Part shown: piece after piece, positions 1,371 to 13,770 of the stretch
How positions within the stretch are numbered: position 1 is the stretch's first letter
How the letters are laid out: each line of letters begins with the position of its first letter
Origin: Vitrella brassicaformis CCMP3155
Lineage: Eukaryota > Protista > Chromerida
Length of the DNA: 13,793 nt
Reading direction: 5' to 3'
Assembly (NCBI GenBank): GCA_001179505.1
Contig: CDMY01000874.1
Span: forward strand, 1-13,793
The notes under the pieces: model-generated
The model's input: only the letters and a program-made list of their open reading frames with translations
What the model was told of the DNA's origin: nothing
Database searches by the model: none
Position numbers and translations under genes: made by a program

Positions 1371-1928
1371 ACAGCAGACAGCTGACCATGCTTGTGCCGA
1401 TGCACTTATGCAGTCCTCCCACTTGTCTGCTTTGTTGCCACACACGTGAAGGAAAGGAGACGAGGGAGGGTGGGAGGGAGGGAGAAAGAGAGACACGAGT
1501 GGCCTGCGACATGACGCCACACAACACAAGACACCGCCACATGGCAGCGTTGGGGTGTCTCGTGTGTGTGTGGTTAGACCTGCGTGAACTAGGGAGATGG
1601 ACGGATGGCATCGATTATTTGATGGTCGCGACTGTGTGTGCTGGCGTGCGTTGACGTTGACGGATGCAGCGAAGTTCGGGCAAACATACGAACGAACGAC
1701 TCCTCAACCTCAGCAAGTTTTGAGATTAGACATAAATGTCCCTCTGTCTCGGTCCATCCATCCATCCATGGGTGGCGCTGGTTGGCAGAGAGACAGGCAG
1801 GGCAACGCAGGGCAACGCAGGGCGAGGCGAGAAAAGTGGATTGAGACAGAGGAGAGCGGCGAGTAGGTGGGGGAGGGACGGTGGGTGGCCTCTGTCAGGC
1901 CGCGTGCATCGCATCGCAGCACATGTGT

Positions 1929-1957
1929 GCAGGCAGGCAGGCAGGCAGGCAGGCAGG
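1929..1957. repeat. (GCAG)n microsatellite, representative of many (GGCA)n, (GACA)n, (CCAT)n, (CAGT)n and (CA)n tracts in introns and intergenic DNA
   Basis: Directly visible. Other examples: (CA)n at 3367-3391, (GACA)n at 10023-10050, (AC)n at 13386-13406. Confidence 0.95.
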
Positions 1958-2180
1958 TATCGACCAACTGCATCCTATCCATCAAGGAACCAAGGAAGGA
2001 GGCAACTCATCAATCAATCCATCAATCAGTAAAGGCAGGCAGGCAGGCAGGAAGGCAAGAAGGCGATAAAACGGAGGAGCGAGGAAAAAGGACTGTATAT
2101 AGTAAGCAATTGTTAGGTCAAACGTCAAACGGGTCGAGGTCGGTGGGCGCGGGGCGCATACATGCCAGTGCACTGCCCCC

Positions 2181-2480
2181 NNNNNNNNNNNNNNNNNNNN
2201 NNNNNNNNNNNNNNNNNNNNNNNNNNNNNNNNNNNNNNNNNNNNNNNNNNNNNNNNNNNNNNNNNNNNNNNNNNNNNNNNNNNNNNNNNNNNNNNNNNNN
2301 NNNNNNNNNNNNNNNNNNNNNNNNNNNNNNNNNNNNNNNNNNNNNNNNNNNNNNNNNNNNNNNNNNNNNNNNNNNNNNNNNNNNNNNNNNNNNNNNNNNN
2401 NNNNNNNNNNNNNNNNNNNNNNNNNNNNNNNNNNNNNNNNNNNNNNNNNNNNNNNNNNNNNNNNNNNNNNNNNNNNNNNN
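2181..2480. other. Assembly gap (300 N)
   Basis: Run of N directly visible. ORFs spanning it are artefacts. Confidence 1.
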
Positions 2481-4006
2481 CCACACACACACTCATAGGC
2501 AGGCAGGCAGGCAGGCAAAAAACACATGACCACACACACATACACAGTCCACGCATCCACGTGCAGACAAAATTCGGCAAGTACATCTCTCATGCCCCCA
2601 GCCCTCGATCCATCCATCCATCCAGCCGTGCAATCAGTGTCTGTGAGGGATTCACTCACCAGCCAGCCAGCCATCACTTGCAAGGAAGGCAAACCGCCCA
2701 TCCATCCCATCCCCCCCGTCTCCGAAAAACACCGCCACTCGCGCGAGAGACACTCACTCACTCGTTGCGGCATGGCCATGCCATTCGCAGCACGGCATCA
2801 AGACGTACAGACGTACGGACGGCTAGGCAACGTTCGTTCGTACGCGGATGGTGCGTGTTGGCGTGGTGTCTGGCAGCGACCAGCAAAGGGAGGGAACCAG
2901 CCAGCCGACACAAGCAAGATACACAGGGAACCAGGCCGCCACGTGGGCGGGAGCCTGTCTGATTACATGCGATAGATAGATAGCAACCAGACAGAGAGAA
3001 AGGGAAGAGCGTCATCCATCCATCCATCCCTATCTCTCAATGAATGAGTGCAAATGAGCATCAAATCGGTCGGCCACACCTACCTTACCTGCATACACAC
3101 CACACACACAACACTCACGCCAATTGATTACCGCTGTAGCACAAGACAGACAGACAGACAGACAGGGGGACAGACAGATAACAGAGGCTTAGACAGGATT
3201 GGTATGCAAGTACGCACCAAAAACCCCACAGAAGAAGAAGCAGCAGAAGGAGAGGCAGAGGGACAGGGGGGGAGAGGCAGGCACAGAGAGACAGAGAGAG
3301 AGAGAGACGGACGCTCGAGAGCTATCGCACACATGGCACCACGCCGCACGCGCCATGCAGCCAACTACACACACACACACACACACACACAGAGCACTGC
3401 ACCGCCCGCACACGTCTGTATGTCTGTCTGATCTTGTCTACCTACGCTCTAGACAATCAAATCACTTGCTACGCCTACGTCTGTCTGTCTGTCTGTCTCT
3501 CTGTCTGTCTGTCCGAGTTTCTCGCTCGGCGTCCACATACACACATCCCTGCCCCGACCCCACAAATAACCCAGTGGCATCTTGCTCTTACAAAAGCGCC
3601 AAAAAAACGCCCTCAGTCCCTTCCGCGTACGTGCGCACAAATGCTCAGCAAGAAAGGAGGGAGGGAAGGAAGGAAGAAGGCAAGCAGTCGACCAAGCAGG
3701 CAGGCAGGCAGGAAAGGAGGTAACCAGGAGAGAGGGGAAAACACGCCATCGGTCAATCCCCCCACCCCCCACACACATGCACGAAACCTCATCCATCCAT
3801 ACCAAACAAGGTGCGATAAGTACGCAAACACCCAGCCGGCCGCCACCCTCACAAATGCAACGAACTTGGCCCCCAACCCCCCCACCATGGACCGCCACAC
3901 AGCCAGCCGCCATGACAACAGAACCGTAGTGGCCCGCATAATCACAAGGGAGCAAAACACGGTCCCAGATCCACCCACCAGCCCATCCATCCCTCCAGGT
4001 ATTATG

Positions 4007-7000
4007 CTAGACCTGGACCGAGACGGGTGGCGAGACAGCTGAGGACCCTCCGCTGCCCCCCGAGGACCCGCCGCTGCCACTGCCGCCCGAGCCACTGCCG
4101 CCCGGCCCGCCCATTCTGCCCCCACTCCTCAGCTCGACCGGCGAACTTTCGATCGGCTTCCGTGCTCGATAGTGATCCACCTGACGGTCCTGGGAAAGCG
4201 CAGAGAAGAGACAGACAGACAGACAGACAGTGTGTGACGGTGTGGTGTGAGTGAGTATACGATGTGTACCTGGTTGATGGCAGCGGCCCGTTTTTGATGC
4301 CCGTGGTTGGGCCTGTGTCTTGGGGTGAGGACGGCCGATCCGGTGTCGTCATAGTCGTCGTCATCGAACAACTCACCCTCCTGGCCATGGTGCGGGTCGT
4401 GGTCCTCCTCCTCCACACACGGCTGCGGACACGGGCCGTTGCCGTTGGCGTATGGGTGCGTCCGGCCTCCAGCCACAGTGCCGTGAGACGTGGGCATGAC
4501 GGTAGAAGAGCCCTCGGCCGTCTCGTTGTCGCTCCCGTCCGTGTGCTCCCTCTCTGCCTCGGCAGCGGCCTGCGCAGCCGCCTCCTGACTGATCTTGGTG
4601 GCGGGCGCCGTCCTGTGTCTGCGCCTGTAGGGGGATCCCTTCTTGCGCTGGCTTGGGTGCTGGTTGTCTTGGGGCTGATCAGGGGTGACTGTGCGTGGGG
4701 ACGGGGCGAGGGTGACCCGGCGGGTGAGGGGGGCGCCTGTGGAGTCCTTGAGCTGCAGACCAGGGCAGTTGTGCTCGCCGTGGTCCTCCAGGATGGCCTT
4801 CATGAGCTCGCTGCTGATGTTGCGAGCTCGCTTGGCGGGATCGGTCTTGTGGCTGCAGCCATACATAAATGATGACAAACAACACACTTGAGGCCTCGTG
4901 TAGTTACGGGTCTCTCACTGACTGACCGTCTGTTTCTCCTCTGCCCAGCCATGGCAGCCGCCAGCACATTTGGGTCTCTAGCGGGCATCCCGCCGTCCTC
5001 TCCCTCCGCCGCCTTGCCGTCAATCTCGTTCTCGTTCCCATTACTGTTGTCGCCATTGGTCACCTCCCACTCGCCGCGGTTGCCGTTCATCAAATCCAGC
5101 ACCGTCAGCTGCCGCCGCCGTGGCTCGTGGGGGCGGGGCGGGTCGACGTACTGCACCGAGTCGTCAAACTGCAGCTTGTTGGTGACGGATGCGCGTCGGC
5201 GACCGTTGGACGGCGTGAGGATGGGTGGGGCGGGGGGGCGGGGGGCTGCACTCACGCGGAAATACGCCGACGTACGAAGCCCTGCATTCATCCACGCATG
5301 GACAGAGAGCGAGAGAGAATGGGGAGTTGTTGCATGTTGTCGTGTGTGGGTCTCTCGTCACCCACCTGTGTAAGGCGTCCTGTCCTCGAGTTTGGTGCCT
5401 GCGTCTCTTCTGAAGTTGCGGTGCTTTTTCATGATGGTGACGCCGGTGTCCTGGTCGATCTGGCGGTTGGCCGGTGGGTCCCGCCAGTCGAGCTTGAGGT
5501 ACTTGACGCCCGTCTCCGGGTCGATGATTCCCTCGGTGGCCAGCCGCTGACGCACCGCCCCGATTGACGCGTACACGGAGACGGACGTGTGCAGCTGCTG
5601 CAACATGTAGTTGGCCTGCGCCCTCAGACCTGCAGACAGACACAATAAACATCCATCCATCCATCTATCTGGTGTTCTGTCTTACGTTGGTCCTCATCCG
5701 ACTGTTCGCTGCCCGGCCTCTCCTCCCCATCGTCGCACATGGTGACCCCCGCCGGCGGCTGAGACCTCTTCACCTCTTGTTCCCGCCTGTCTGCCTCCTT
5801 CCGCCCATAGCTGCGGTTGAGCGGCGTGCGCGGCGGCTCGCGGCCCCTCTGCTTGACGACCATATTCCTGGGGGTGGGGAACGGGGGCGGCAGCCGCGAG
5901 CGGGAGGAACATGCGCTGTGTGACGACGACATGGACGACGACCCGCTCGGCGTCAGTGTCAGCTGCTGCTTGTCCCTGTTTGTTGTGTCGCCAGCTGACG
6001 GTTGGAAGCTCACTGCGTAGGGGTAGGGGTAGGCGTAGGCGTTGGTGTATGCGCTGTTGTATGTGTGTGGGGGGTTGCGGGTGGGGTTGGGGGGCTGCGT
6101 GAAGGGCGTCATGCCCGACCAGCCGTCGCTCTCGTCGCAGATCTCCATGACGCTCGGCGGCTCGTTGTCGAAGTCGACAATGGGCTGGCTCGGCTGCTCG
6201 CTCGACAGGCTGATCTCGCCACCTGCAGTGGTGGGCATGAAGGGCGGAGGAAGGTGCGGCAGGTCGGTCGAGCGGAACCACAGGTGGTCCAAAGCCAGGT
6301 CTGCAGACGCTCGCGTGTCGGGATCCCTGCACGAGCGACACGTGTGCAAACATTTTGGCTGGGTGGGCTGAGTGCGCCGCGGATGCGTACCGTTTGAGCA
6401 TCCAGTGGAGCAGGTCCAGCGCCTGGGGCGACACCCCAGGAAAACGAGACGCACTCAGGTCAACCTCACACCTGTTGAAAACAAACACATACGCACGCAC
6501 ACATGGAAGGTGATCCGATCCATGAGGTGGATTGTATGCACACACATCCCACCCAAGTCATCTGTGGTTGATCGATCGACTGCCTGGCCTGGCTCTTGCC
6601 TTTGATTGATTGAGCGCACCTCGATCATCTCACCTGAGGTTTTGCTGGAGTATCTCCCTGGCTTCGTCGTCGCGCGAGGGCTCCACCCCGCCGGGCCGTC
6701 TGCGGCTGGCGAATGGCGGGGAGCCCTTGAGCATGATGTAGAATATAACCCCCGCACTGAAAATGTCAACCTTGGTCGTGTACGCCCGGTTCTCGAGGAT
6801 CTCGGGCGCTGACAAACACATGCACGCAGCAGCAGGCACACAGAAGGGGATGAGCGTGGGTTTTTCTGTGCGTCTGTTTGTTTGTGAGGTGCCTACCAAC
6901 GTATCCCGGCGACCCGCATCTCATGTTCATTTTGTTGTGGTTGTTCGTGTGGCAGGCCAGGCCGAAGTCGATGACCTTGACGCTCGAGCCGTCGCACTCA

Positions 7001-8533
7001 TCCTCCAAGATCAAATTCTCAGTCTACGCAAACAAATAAGCCAGCGATCGAATGAATGATATGGGCGCGCCCTCTGTGTGTTACCTTGAGGTCTCTGTGG
7101 ACGATGTTGAGCGAGTGGAGGCACTTGAGGGCCAGGAGGATCCGCCAGATGGCGACTCGCGCAACGTGTTCGGGGTAGGCGCCCCGCTCCTGGATGAAGT
7201 CGTACACCTCCCCGCCACGCAAATACTCCATCACCAGACACACATAGTTCTCTGACATCCACACACAGAGAGAGAGAGAGAGAGATGCGGGACAGTGACC
7301 TCTTCTTGTGTGCACGTGCACACCTTGTTCGTAAGCGCCGTATAGTTTGGCGATGTAGGGGTGGTCGATGCGCGAGAGTATGTTGATCTCGGCCTGGATA
7401 TTGGAGCTATCCACATCCTTGGTCGGCACCGCCTTGACGATCTTCTCGTCCTCGGACGAGATCTCCTTGGCAACGTACACCTGCCAGTCGCACGCCCACA
7501 CGCCCACACGCCCATGCATGCACACTCCTCCAACCAACCGATGAGAACAGAGCTCACCTTGCCGAATGAGCCTTCCCCGATATACTCGGTGAGCGAGTAG
7601 AGGTCCGTGAAGATCAGCTCGCGGCAGCCCGCCTTGACGAGGATGGCGTTCCACAGGTTGCGGTAGTCGTGGCGCTGAGCAGAAAACTCATAGATGCCGC
7701 CACGCGCATCCAAATTGAAGCAGGGCCTGCACACAGCAAAGGACAGACAGAGAGGCAGAACCGATCGTTTGTGAGGGTTTAGCGTGGATGCTGTCTGTCT
7801 GTCTGTCTGTCTGTCTGTTGGTTGTCTGTGCCCACCCTCTTTCTGTGAGGTTGTTGACGAAGCGCACGCCACACAGAGGGATGACAAACGACGGCTGGTC
7901 GTTCCTCTCAGACATCATGGTCACGTCATTGTCCTGCCTCTCACCCTCCCCACCACCACCAGCCGTCACACCACCCCGATAGCCGAAGAGCCCCCTCTGG
8001 AAAGCCCCTGCCGCCCCCTTGCTGGTGCCGCCTGACTGTCTGCTTCTCAGCAAGCTGTTGCTGTGCGGGTGTGCAAAGCAGAGCAGCGAGTACATGACCG
8101 AGTTGGGTTCCCGGTAGTCGGCCAGCGTTGCCTGGCTCCTCCGCAGCGTGTAGCCGTCATGCTCCTCGTAGTAGGCAAGCGCCACGTAGCGGGTCATCTC
8201 GGTCGACAGGGGCAGGTAGTAGCGGTAGCCACTCTCCACCATGCGAGGCAGGTTGCAGCCCTTGACGCTCCGCCACTCGGTCGACGAGCCGTCCAACCCC
8301 AGCCACGTGAGCAGGTCGGGCGCCAGCTGCAGCGGCTGCACGGGCTGCTGGGAGAGGCTTGAGATAGCCGGGGTGGCAGGGCCTGTGGTTATCTCGGGGT
8401 TGACATGGTGGGAGGGTGGAATGGGTCGGCCATTGTTGGGGTGGTGACGCACCTGTTGTGGGTGCCGCTGGTGGGCAGGGGGAGGACAACCAGCAGCCAG
8501 CTGCCGCTGATGCTGCTGGTGGCCGACGCGCAT
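4007..8533 (-). CDS. PH-domain-containing CAMK-group Ser/Thr protein kinase with long low-complexity C-terminal tail (about 1199 aa from ATG 8533; true 5' end may lie further upstream)
   Basis: Exons 8533-7836, 7726-7558, 7480-7324, 7251-7085, 7023-6897, 6808-6634, 6471-6391, 6326-5686, 5629-5366, 5281-4927, 4852-4270, 4189-4007. All introns are GT-AG and phase-consistent, and exons sum to 3600 nt. Kinase motifs: IGEGSFGKVY, KIVK (beta3 Lys), AEINILSRIDHPYI, VMEYLRGGEV, HRDLKTEN, IDFGL, CGSPGYVAPE, KVDIFSAGV, DPDTRAS, HLWF. Directly upstream is a PH-like C-terminal half: LLCF...PSFVIPLCGV...CFNL...GIYEFSA...LWNAILVK. Confidence 0.92.
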
Positions 8534-11799: not shown

Positions 11800-12834
11800 T
11801 CTATTCTCTTCATCCGGCTACGACCGAGGTCGCCTTATCACACACCTATCTGCAGGCAGGCAGGCAGGCAGGCACACCGACACAGCACGGAAAATGAATG
11901 AACGAGTGGAATGGATGGCGTGTGCGAACCTAGCAGCGTCTTGTGTAAGTACGCTATGATCTTCCTGTCTGGCTTATTCTCATCTCCATGTACGTCTTGG
12001 TACCTGTTTGCTTGCGTGTGTCGATGCATTGCATGGCTGGTGTGCAGCAGTGTGGCTTAACGAGGGCCTGCATACCATCAGCACACACACACAGGTCGAT
12101 TGCCTTTCCGCCTCTCCTTGTGAGTGATGTGTCGAGGTCTCTGCGTACCTGTGGATGGTGGTGTGACGCCCTTGTCGCCCTTGACGCCTGCCCTTGTGGT
12201 GATGTCAGCTCGCAGATCGACATGAGCGAAAACGCCGGTGAGGACCTTTCCTGTAGTTAGCTGAATAGAGGATCTGCTGGGCGGTAAGTCCCAGAGTAAG
12301 AGTGCTTTTACCTTAGTAAGCCCGATGGACTGGCCAGTCAGTCAAAGTTGTTTCTGTCCATGTATGGCATCATGAAGGGTGGTCAACACAGATCTCACTT
12401 CGGTGATGGCTGATAAGTTCGTGTCTCCTCAGAATGCTTTCCTTCTCTTTCCTTATCTTCTCCTCTTCCACCTCTCTCTCTCCGTTACACAGCAATCTAC
12501 CCTAGCTTACAAGCTCGCAGTGGTTCGTCTTGCCAAGCTGGCAATCCTGACACGACATCGCCGCATTACCTCACTTGCCGAGCGTGTCCCCTTGCCGGTT
12601 GAAGCCGATCTTTGGCTTCGGACGCACGTGAAACGAACGAGGAGCTGACCGTTGGTGTGTCGTTTCCTCCAGGCCTCCAATCCTGTCGGATTGTGTTATC
12701 TTTCTGCTGGACCATCCCTGCCGACTCTTGTGTCATCTTTCTGCTGGACCATCCCTGCCGACTCACGAGTGCAGCGCTCCATGACCTTTACGCTCGCTGT
12801 TGGTGCTCCCCTCTCTCAGATCTTCAGAAGCGGC
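11800..12834. promoter_or_regulatory. Probable bidirectional promoter / 5'-UTR region between the divergent FKBP-like and NTPase genes
   Basis: Inferred from the head-to-head gene arrangement, lack of convincing coding sequence, pyrimidine-rich tracts, and probable 5'-UTR acceptors (cctgcag at about 11850 on -, ctctcag at about 12819 on +). No specific core elements identified. Confidence 0.4.
12691..12764 (+). repeat. Tandem duplication, 2 x 37 bp (ttgtgtYatctttctgctggaccatccctgccgactc)
   Basis: Copies at 12691-12727 and 12728-12764 differ by one base and have no spacer. Confidence 0.95.
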
Positions 12835-13770
12835 ATGATGATTTCGGCATCGTCTCTGCTGCTTGCGTGCTTCCTGATGGTCCAGATGGCCACCGGCTCT
12901 TTGGTTGCTTTTCATACTCATCGAGCCCATGCGGCAAAGGCGCAGGCTAGGGCGATGCCTGGGTGGGCACGGCGGCGATCTCGGCTCTCTTCTCACATGA
13001 GGATGAGTCAAGAGGGTGAGTGAGCGACCAAGGGGGAAGAGCAGACGAGCGGCATTGCCCCTCACACACCGCTGTGTGTTGTCTGCGCATGTGTGTGTCA
13101 AATGCAGGTAGGCTGCGTGTGACGCCTGACGGCTTGGTGCCCCTCAAAGACCTCAACGAGCTGTCGCTCAGAGAACAGTCGCTCAGAGAACAGTCACCGT
13201 CGCCGTCGTCGGAGGAGCTCGTGCCTTCCATCAATCTCGTTAGCATCGATCCCGCTTACTTCATTGGTGACAAGGATCTCAGCGAAGTGGTCAGCGACAT
13301 CATGCGGTGGTACAAGGATTCCGACAGCTCTCTTGGGTCATCAGATCGGATTCCACTCATGTCGTAAGCACTCAAAAGTGCCAAAACACACACACACACA
13401 CACACATGCACACACGCCTCTTCTCTCTCCTGTTGCAATGCTGCATGTGCTTGCAGTCTTACCCGCCACCCCCGCGGAGGCAAGACCCGGTTTCTGAAGG
13501 AGATTGGGCGCCGGCTCCGCGACAAGGAGAAAGTGCCCTCCATCAGAATCACTTTCAACGATCGGACTTCGTACCAGAGAGTGGAGAAGACCCTATCGCT
13601 GGAACAGCGGCTGCTCAAGCGAATCGGCTGGTCGGTGGCCACCGATGAGACGCGCCGTCTTGTGGGCAACGACTTCGAGCGATGGATGGAGACGGTGGAC
13701 GTGCCGGACAAGACGATAAAGGAGTGGCTGGGTGACGGCGGCTGTGTGCTCCTCATCGATGAGATGAACA
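12835..13770 (+). CDS. 5' part of a P-loop NTPase (Crinkler/CR-effector-like NTPase signature) with N-terminal signal peptide plus transit-peptide-like leader; runs off the window
   Basis: Exons 12835-13015, 13108-13363, 13457-13770. Donors G|GTGAGT, TC|GTAAGC and A|GTAAGT and acceptors aatgcag and cttgcag; phases 1 and 2 are consistent. Translation: MMISASSLLLACFLMVQMATGSLVA-FHTHRAH...MRMSQEG...IPLMSLTRHPRGGKTRFLKEIG...IRITFND...KEWLGDGGCVLLIDEMN. Walker A variant RxxRGGKT and Walker B hhhhDE. Confidence 0.82.
13163..13192 (+). repeat. In-frame 15-bp coding tandem duplication (SLREQ x2)
   Basis: gtcgctcagagaaca occurs twice consecutively inside exon 2 of the NTPase gene. Confidence 0.95.

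Follow-up and report, generated by a model that had tools for sequence, protein, structure and literature searches.

A five-exon gene of Vitrella brassicaformis for a putative Crinkler-type ATPase-nuclease with a predicted plastid-type leader

Vitrella brassicaformis belongs to the lineage of the closest phototrophic relatives of Apicomplexa. The window analyzed here is one entire contig of its assembly, CDMY01000874.1 (C874; 13,793 bases), from a genome of 72.7 Mb in 1064 contigs. At the right end of this window lies the first part of an intact five-exon nuclear gene, which resumes on a second contig, C1059, and for which transcription was seen at least over the junction of exons 3 and 4 (Table 1). 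The predicted protein of ~740 amino acids (aa), assuming an unspliced tail, starts with a putative bipartite leader, continues with an AAA+-type P-loop NTPase and a helical region, and finishes with a nuclease-like domain. Its last ~80 residues are of low complexity and have no counterpart in the paralogue, and the predicted C-terminus is uncertain.

The final 50 bases of the window match an end of contig C1059 (4755 bases) without a difference. In addition, a paralogue on contig C372 is colinear with C874 and then with C1059 (90% and then 81% identity), and a 546-base contig from run X1 has window positions 13735-13770 abutting 30 bases of exon 4, without intron 3. The overlap, the colinear paralogue, and the transcript contig establish C874 and C1059 as neighbors. 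The 30 bases of exon 4 in the X1 contig match C1059 exactly from 4624 downward and differ from the C372 paralogue. The sequence of this contig thus indicates that intron 3 is removed and that the window copy, not the C372 paralogue, is transcribed. Run X1 was taken as RNA by guess, and both RNA-type runs (X1 and X7) were seen as contigs only, which are uninformative on expression level and transcript ends. No transcript of the window gene emerged from a second word search, which did bring up closer Vitrella paralogues.

Within the window, exons 1 and 2 as well as exons 2 and 3 are connected by canonical GT-AG joins that keep the reading frame, and the frame of exon 1 meets a stop (13021-13023) two codons past the GTGAGT donor at 13016. 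The exon 2/3 junction is supported because the family motif R-x-P-x-M-x3-R-x3-GGKT, which spans it, regains its exact spacing only after splicing. The window exons recur on C372 at ~90% identity, with leader indels that are multiples of three. Because of this recurrence and these indels, together with the family motif across exons 2 and 3 and the spliced transcript across exons 3 and 4, a chance open reading frame (ORF) is excluded. The preliminary description of this DNA, which joined an exon at 12835-13015 to position 13108 and identified a Walker A motif, an ITFND strand, and a Walker B motif LLIDEMN, reads the sequence as we do. The C372 paralogue (L010) changes frame in the equivalent of exon 4 (~4340-4360), either through a frameshift in a decaying copy or through an extra small intron.

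Table 1. Positions of the gene and of features around it. Coordinates are those of the window unless contig C1059 (locus L009) is named.
Feature	Position	Strand	Basis or remark
Exon 1	12835-13015	+	ATG at 12835; 60 codons; closes in phase 1
Predicted endoplasmic reticulum (ER) signal peptide, 25 aa, C-terminal end GSLVA	12835-12909	+	Translation, hydrophobicity
Transit-peptide-like region, Phe as +1	12910-13015	+	Translation, composition, ASAFind-type score
Intron 1, GTGAGT...CAG	13016-13107	+	Splice sites; paralogues with an intron at the equivalent position
Exon 2, linker common to the family, precedes the ATPase	13108-13363	+	Aligns with paralogues; family motifs R-x-x-V...DL-x-P-L, then YFIG, then DRIPLM
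Intron 2, GTAAGC...CAG, with a (CA)n run	13364-13456	+	Splice restores the family motif
Exon 3, encoding the first half of the P-loop NTPase (AAA+ type)	13457-13770	+	Translation, invariant family columns
Walker A, RHPRGGKT	13464-13487	+	Exon 3
Strand, ITFND	13548-13562	+	Exon 3
Walker B, LLIDEMN	13749-13769	+	Exon 3
Intron 3 start, GTAAGT, up to the contig end	13771-13793	+	Gene resumes on C1059
Exon 4	C1059 (L009) 4624-3849	minus	258 codons; remaining ATPase, helical region, SGKEWE helix
Exon 5	C1059 (L009) 3766 to ~3074	minus	~231 codons; putative nuclease core KYD...YGYQCK
High-copy dispersed repeat	12300-12553		Sharp edge at 12552/12553
Inverted copy of the repeat	C1059 ~964-1131
Copia-type gag ORF	C1059 (L009) 1-789	minus	PF14223, E = 3e-10; cut by the end of the contig; lies ~2.3 kb downstream
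Protein kinase exon(s)	7022-7654	minus	PF00069, E = 1.7e-21
Run of N (assembly gap)	~2180-2480		In a low-GC stretch (GC 0.40, 1500-3000)
(CA)n/(GT)n runs in introns, examples	13380-13412; L009 4690-4628

The gene model was searched exon by exon, with the uninterrupted paralogues L054, P0001, and P0005 serving as proxies for domains that introns split. The best Pfam matches to the exons and these three full-length paralogues were ATPase_2, AAA, and AAA_16, with 12.9-15.3 bits against cutoffs of 21-33, and a sequence search of PDB chains returned no match. For C562, the closest paralogue without interruption, the ATPase region was modeled with AlphaFold, and the core of the model is confident (predicted local distance difference test, 84-92). 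With this model, Foldseek found the archaeal Walker ATPase 2qen as well as ORC, Cdc6, RFC, and MuB at probabilities of up to 0.99, although with E-values of only ~1e-3 and 12-16% identity. As modeled, the N-terminal half of the module is an AAA+-type ATPase.

The same matches might be taken to mean that the gene encodes a housekeeping AAA+ ATPase, i.e., a relative of replication initiators or clamp loaders that is imported into the plastid, since ORC, Cdc6, and RFC are the best structural matches and the weak Pfam matches are of the same kind. However, those Pfam scores fall far below the cutoffs and the fold matches are remote, and the nuclease-like fusion, the dozens of divergent paralogues, the variable headers, and the family members with a Crinkler header led us to reject this explanation, which we consider extremely unlikely.

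The preliminary description had expected a restriction-endonuclease (REase)-type domain downstream, and following the gene onto C1059 brought to light a domain with an E...D...QxK motif, whose fold match is weak. The model of this C-terminal domain in paralogue P0005 (predicted template modeling score, 0.85) is arranged as alpha-beta-beta-beta, with W-E carried by the long helix 1, an Asp immediately preceding strand 2, and Q-x-K located in strand 3. This helix/strand layout of the motifs is that of PD-(D/E)xK nucleases, and the residues on those elements are invariant in the family (D and Q-x-K) or nearly so (W-E). Moreover, ~20 of the 50 best matches from the VIA exhaustive aligner are restriction-type nucleases (SgrAI, BspD6I, McrBC, Can2, MspJI, FokI, NgoMIV, and others). 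The structural neighbors in the ESM Atlas comprise Mucoromycota hypothetical proteins (template modeling [TM] score, 0.57), a cluster in which 88% of the members have a Crinkler N-terminal domain (TM score, 0.49), and the DUF4143, PDDEXK_2, and NotI families. On these models, a restriction-endonuclease fold is likely but not proven. A CE-peptidase reading, raised by weak Foldseek rows (Lem17, YopJ-type, Ulp1-type), was rejected because the family has no invariant Cys/His. The helical region between the two domains contains WPPCYL and lies only partly inside the two models.

We used exons 3, 4, and 5 to search the genome and obtained 36, 42, and 25 matching places, respectively, corresponding to at least 35 loci, several of which have open frames of 650-780 codons. 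The paralogues are 30-55% identical, have introns, and keep all catalytic-type residues. A local cluster on contig C345 (28-84 kb) holds five of them within ~56 kb, on both strands. When an 18-member profile was run against 1.84 billion proteins in public data, the representatives (50% identity clusters) numbered 1356 at E <= 0.001, of which 514 reached E <= 1e-30; the best 150 of the 1356 were inspected. Named members come from Nitzschia, another diatom (transcriptome "Amphip..."), Symbiodinium, Chromera, and the aphelid Amoeboaphelidium. The invariant or near-invariant columns are R-x3-GGKT-R, hhhhDELN, R-[YF]-hh-F-S-S-H, a further Arg and L-P, W-x-P, SG-x-x-W-E, F-x3-D, G-Y-Q-x-K, and two Gly. 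Every invariant family residue is present in the window gene.

According to Zhang et al. (2016), as summarized in PMC5289972, effectors of the Crinkler/RHS (CR) class consist of variable headers and C-terminal toxin modules, the commonest of which combines an NTPase, a helix-turn-helix, and an REase, and they are present in free-living eukaryotes too. In our analysis, the Crinkler N-terminal domain (PF20147) was found in 3 of 52 scanned family representatives. One of these, Nitzschia P0074, matches PF20147 at E = 1.3e-6 (29.6 bits vs a cutoff of 24.6) and the module at E = 1.8e-123. In addition, feature (language-model) neighbors in the ESM Atlas include Crinkler clusters at 0.94. Since the PF20147 header occurs on members of the same family, we regard the module, with high confidence as far as sequence comparison can tell, as a CR-type ATPase-nuclease. 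The class had earlier been proposed from an RxxRGGKT signature; what bears it out is the PF20147-bearing members and the ESM Atlas neighbors rather than that signature. Neither PF20147 nor any other Pfam model matched window exons 1 and 2, and the window protein is without a ubiquitin-like (Ubl)/LxLFLAK header.

What takes the place of such a header is the product of exon 1, i.e., 25 hydrophobic residues followed by Phe and another 34 residues. The predicted signal peptide has a core of 14 hydrophobic residues (Kyte-Doolittle value of 2.38 in a 12-residue window), and the predicted cleavage site lies between Ala (-1) and Phe (+1). The 35 residues that follow it include 8 K/R, 4 H, 7 A, 5 S/T, and 1 acidic residue, the final Glu. 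Of the leader proposed in the preliminary description, the hydrophobic N-terminus with its predicted signal peptide, the Phe at +1, and the basic tail stand, and the claimed absence of acidic residues fails at that last position. Phe is found directly after signal-peptide cleavage in plastid proteins of both chromerids (PMC6668581), and the ASAFind matrix published for V. brassicaformis has a threshold of 1 and reported scores of up to ~6 (Fussy et al. 2019, PMC6668581). Hand sums with this matrix over positions -5 to +20 gave 5.06 for the window leader and 5.53 for the leader of paralogue P0002, which is supportive of a plastid signal, not decisive. Collectively, the Ala at -1, the Phe at +1, the basic and acid-poor tail, the score, and the retention of the exon across paralogues agree with the bipartite plastid-type leader proposed earlier.

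Headers are known for ~16 of the at least 35 loci, from the region upstream of the ATPase in 16 loci and from annotated or transcript-derived proteins. A hydrophobic core followed by (A/S)|F was found in the window gene and in the paralogues on C372, C40 (P0001), C651 (P0002), C86, C794, and C356 (P0091), with further possible cases on C265, C688, and C630. In every such case, the leader is a separate first exon just 5' of the start of the conserved body. A genome search with the 60-aa leader matched solely the C372 copy, and the others were found by inspecting upstream ORFs and proteins. Between subfamilies, the hydrophobic cores are almost wholly divergent; the Phe is kept in all, often as F-x-H. 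Several leaders, among those of the window gene, C372, C356, and C86, combine F-x-H with an M-S-Q end just before the intron, perhaps as a processing site. In a set of 49 family representatives whose N-terminus is complete, leaders of this kind are confined to Vitrella.

One could still argue that the leader does not belong to the protein and that exon 1 is a relic, a mis-joined exon, or an ORF lying upstream. Translation would then begin farther downstream, and the product would be an NTPase-nuclease of the cytosol or nucleus. The uncovered stretch of the window in the RNA contigs (see below) would fit this, and the frame break downstream in the close C372 copy implies that some copies may be decaying. 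Against it stand the GT-AG sites in the right phase, the closing of the exon 1 frame just past the donor, the start of exon 2 without an in-frame ATG, and the leader indels between the two closest copies. Furthermore, the leader-intron-body layout recurs in at least seven paralogues. For one of them, P0002 on C651, the leader-body junction is shown by RNA, because P0002 is a complete MMETSP transcript in which the leader is spliced to the module. A detached leader is thus improbable, even more so than the mobile-element explanation discussed below, and the leader in all likelihood forms part of the window protein.

The leader is one of several headers in this family. The nearest uninterrupted relatives, C562 and C477, have a short basic exon of the nuclear localization signal (NLS) type in its place, and P0007, P0076, and P0176 have NLS-type headers as well. 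P0004 shows a Coilin_N-like domain (PF15862) followed by an Arg-rich stretch, possibly a Ubl-type header within Vitrella. In total, the header types comprise the leader, the NLS type, Coilin_N-like plus Arg-rich, SAM, BRCT, UCH, and Crinkler; a SAP domain occurs in other members. In a maximum-likelihood tree of the exon 4 region, the Vitrella copies form one group with a Chromera protein adjoining. Each of the three Vitrella subgroups includes copies with the leader, among which the NLS-type copies (P0007, P0076, P0176, and P0004) are nested; given headers for ~16 loci, this unrooted tree requires the header type to have changed at least four times. Since the tree is unrooted and headers are known for that number of loci, we draw no direction of change from it. 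Judging from these sequences, headers are exchangeable on a constant module.

We favor, with modest confidence, the reading that a CR-type ATPase-nuclease module behind a bipartite leader is sent to the plastid via a Phe-dependent route; taken on its own and from the leader sequence, the plastid as the destination of the leader-bearing protein is an evenly balanced proposition. The main rival is a secreted or vacuole/extrusome-directed effector, in which the basic stretch would be a pro-peptide or an uptake motif, as in signal-peptide-bearing oomycete Crinklers, and the nuclease would act on a competitor, grazer, host, or virus rather than on plastid DNA. It would suit a Crinkler-class module, the best-known members of the class being secreted effectors (PMC5289972). 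In addition, the cleavage-site Ala that dominates the ASAFind-type score can be present in any well-cleaved secretory protein, HECTAR labeled most plastid controls "secretory" too, according to the authors of the matrix (PMC6668581), and the signal peptide of P0169, a non-Vitrella relative, is a plain one, followed by neither Phe nor a basic tail. However, ordinary secretion needs no Phe at +1 and red-derived plastid import does (PMC6668581), and this Phe is kept after cleavage in all leader-bearing paralogues despite the drifting signal peptide. The composition of the tail is that of a transit peptide, sister copies with nuclear signals fit an enzyme that acts on the cell's own DNA compartments, and no effector delivery is known for Vitrella, a phototroph that lives freely or in association with corals. 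A secreted effector is therefore rather unlikely in our estimation.

Several observations weigh against the favored plastid reading. At the level of the gene, no RNA contig from runs X1 and X7 lies over 12600-13700, i.e., over exons 1-3 of the window copy, and the predicted leader-body join in this copy draws on splice signals, frame, and paralogues. As to the leader, the predicted signal peptide is without a basic n-region and has Leu at -3, and the Ala at -1 contributes 2.74 of the score of 5.06 and the Phe just 0.80. The authors of the matrix caution that secretory negative controls were few or lacking and report that the +1 Phe is less conserved in Vitrella than in Chromera (PMC6668581). 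Since the leaders of the paralogues are homologous, the retained Phe does not count as ten independent observations. With regard to the module, no Pfam, NCBIfam, or PADLOC model reached its cutoff for the exons or the uninterrupted paralogues, and no oomycete Crinkler is among the best 150 representatives. The putative nuclease has Q in place of the usual acidic residue of (D/E)xK, Foldseek returned no match of the C-terminal domain in the PDB at E <= 0.001, and the best Z of the VIA aligner was 4.3, with CE-clan peptidases interleaved among the nuclease matches.

If the plastid reading is correct, the first exon would serve as an exchangeable address label, and the same module would be fitted with either a bipartite leader or a short NLS-type header. 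The leader would bring the protein into the ER and then, via the Phe-dependent route of red-derived plastids, into the plastid, and sister copies with NLS-type headers would go to the nucleus. To our knowledge, the plastid is the sole DNA-containing compartment reached by the ER/Phe route. The AAA+ part would couple ATP binding to DNA binding or oligomerization and would so control the action of the nuclease on DNA, in the manner proposed for CR modules (PMC5289972). Our analysis shows the structure of the gene, its family, the tie to Crinkler headers, the AAA+ fold, the pattern of motifs, and the conservation of the leader, whereas we infer that the signal peptide functions, that the plastid is the destination, that the nuclease is active, and what the biological role would be. 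The specific role of plastid-directed copies is less certain than their destination. One possibility, which we put forward as doubtful, is a compartment-addressed conflict system, where one module is re-addressed to the nucleus or the plastid by a swap of its first exon and the plastid copies act on plastid or foreign DNA. Their roles may include surveillance of the organelle genome, control of its copy number, or its degradation in the life cycle.

The surroundings of the gene bear on another explanation, namely that the module is selfish-element cargo, a family that expands on or derives from mobile elements like the trypanosome retrotransposon hot-spot proteins (RHSP) and has no plastid function for the host. 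Upstream of the gene lies a high-copy dispersed repeat, with a word depth in DNA runs of ~26000 compared with ~20 over the gene. The repeat also occurs at the C946 contig end and, in inverted orientation, on C1059, such that the gene is bracketed by inverted copies, and a copia-type gag ORF follows on C1059. These flanks, the position of the gene at assembly breaks, the many paralogues with five clustered on C345, and the derivation of the CR class from transposon proteins as stated in PMC5289972 all suit a mobile origin. In contrast, the paralogues are old, diverged, and intron-containing, with their catalytic-type residues intact, and the module has no attached transposase. The upstream flank holds ordinary host genes, because a protein kinase is encoded there; the minus-strand ORFs around the kinase have no Pfam match. 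In addition, none of the Pfam RHSP models matched the exons or the three full-length paralogues at E <= 1. Selfish cargo without host function is accordingly unlikely by a wide measure, and a selfish-element origin of the family would be compatible with either the plastid or the secretion reading. Apart from these features, the window contains a run of N in a low-GC stretch and scattered (GACA)n-type runs, and (CA)n/(GT)n runs are present in introns of the gene and its paralogues.

What is known of Crinkler-class proteins concerns mainly oomycetes and fungi, by which they are secreted as cell-death effectors; they are thought to be nucleic-acid-targeting toxins in conflicts between organisms. 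Our full-text literature search returned no paper connecting Crinklers with Vitrella, and the papers that mention both Crinklers and plastid transit peptides concern other topics, as judged by title and abstract. We thus found no description in these searches of a Crinkler-class ATPase-nuclease behind a plastid-style leader. Should the plastid address be true, enzymes of the CR class would also act inside the cell that encodes them, on organelle DNA, and exchange of exon 1 would re-route one effector module between compartments. With a compartment-addressed system, if real, the Crinkler effector class would have its first member directed to an organelle. The ~10 leaders with their invariant Phe also offer a test set for the rules of plastid import in chromerids, with relevance to apicoplast targeting in the parasites related to them. 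Secretion of the protein, if that is its fate, would instead be evidence that a phototrophic alveolate engages in effector-like warfare.

Compared with the Crinkler/CR effectors of Zhang et al. (2016; summarized in PMC5289972 and PMC11064341), the window protein has the same order of P-loop NTPase, helical region, and REase-fold-like domain, and its family likewise places variable headers on a constant module and has undergone lineage-specific expansion. It differs in its header, which is a predicted signal peptide with a Phe-initiated transit-like peptide rather than Ubl/LxLFLAK or a plain signal peptide, and in its host, a phototroph with a complex plastid; just one CR header, from Angomonas, is reported to have a hydrophobic region (PMC5289972). 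The trypanosomatid RHSP resemble it as a large multigene P-loop NTPase family that is grouped with the Crinklers in the CR class (PMC5289972) and is associated with repeats and retroelements, but they have other headers, and the copies seen in Vitrella are free of retroelement insertions inside the genes.

The ATPases of ORC/Cdc6 and of clamp loaders share with the window protein the core fold, Walker A and B, a sensor-1-like strand (FTSH), and a conserved Arg; besides the low identity, the differences are the change of the first Gly of Walker A to Arg, the nuclease-like domain, and the multicopy nature of the family. Prokaryotic proteins with an ATPase and a PD-(D/E)xK domain (AAA_14 with DUF4143; ATPase_2 with Hjc or Mrr_cat) are similar in that a small REase-fold domain follows an AAA+-type ATPase. 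Such proteins are among the feature and structural neighbors, and the archaeal 2qen is among the fold matches; there is, however, no significant sequence match to them, and the Vitrella family is eukaryotic, with introns and targeting headers. Finally, the window protein, with its predicted signal peptide, resembles the chromerid plastid proteins (PMC6668581) in the Ala at -1, the Phe at +1, and a tail that is A/R/S-rich and D/E-poor, and its score lies near the top of the range reported for them. It differs from them in that His is unusually common after the Phe (F-x-H in the paralogues, FHTH in the window gene) and in that the cargo behind the leader is a putative conflict-type ATPase-nuclease instead of a photosynthetic or metabolic enzyme.

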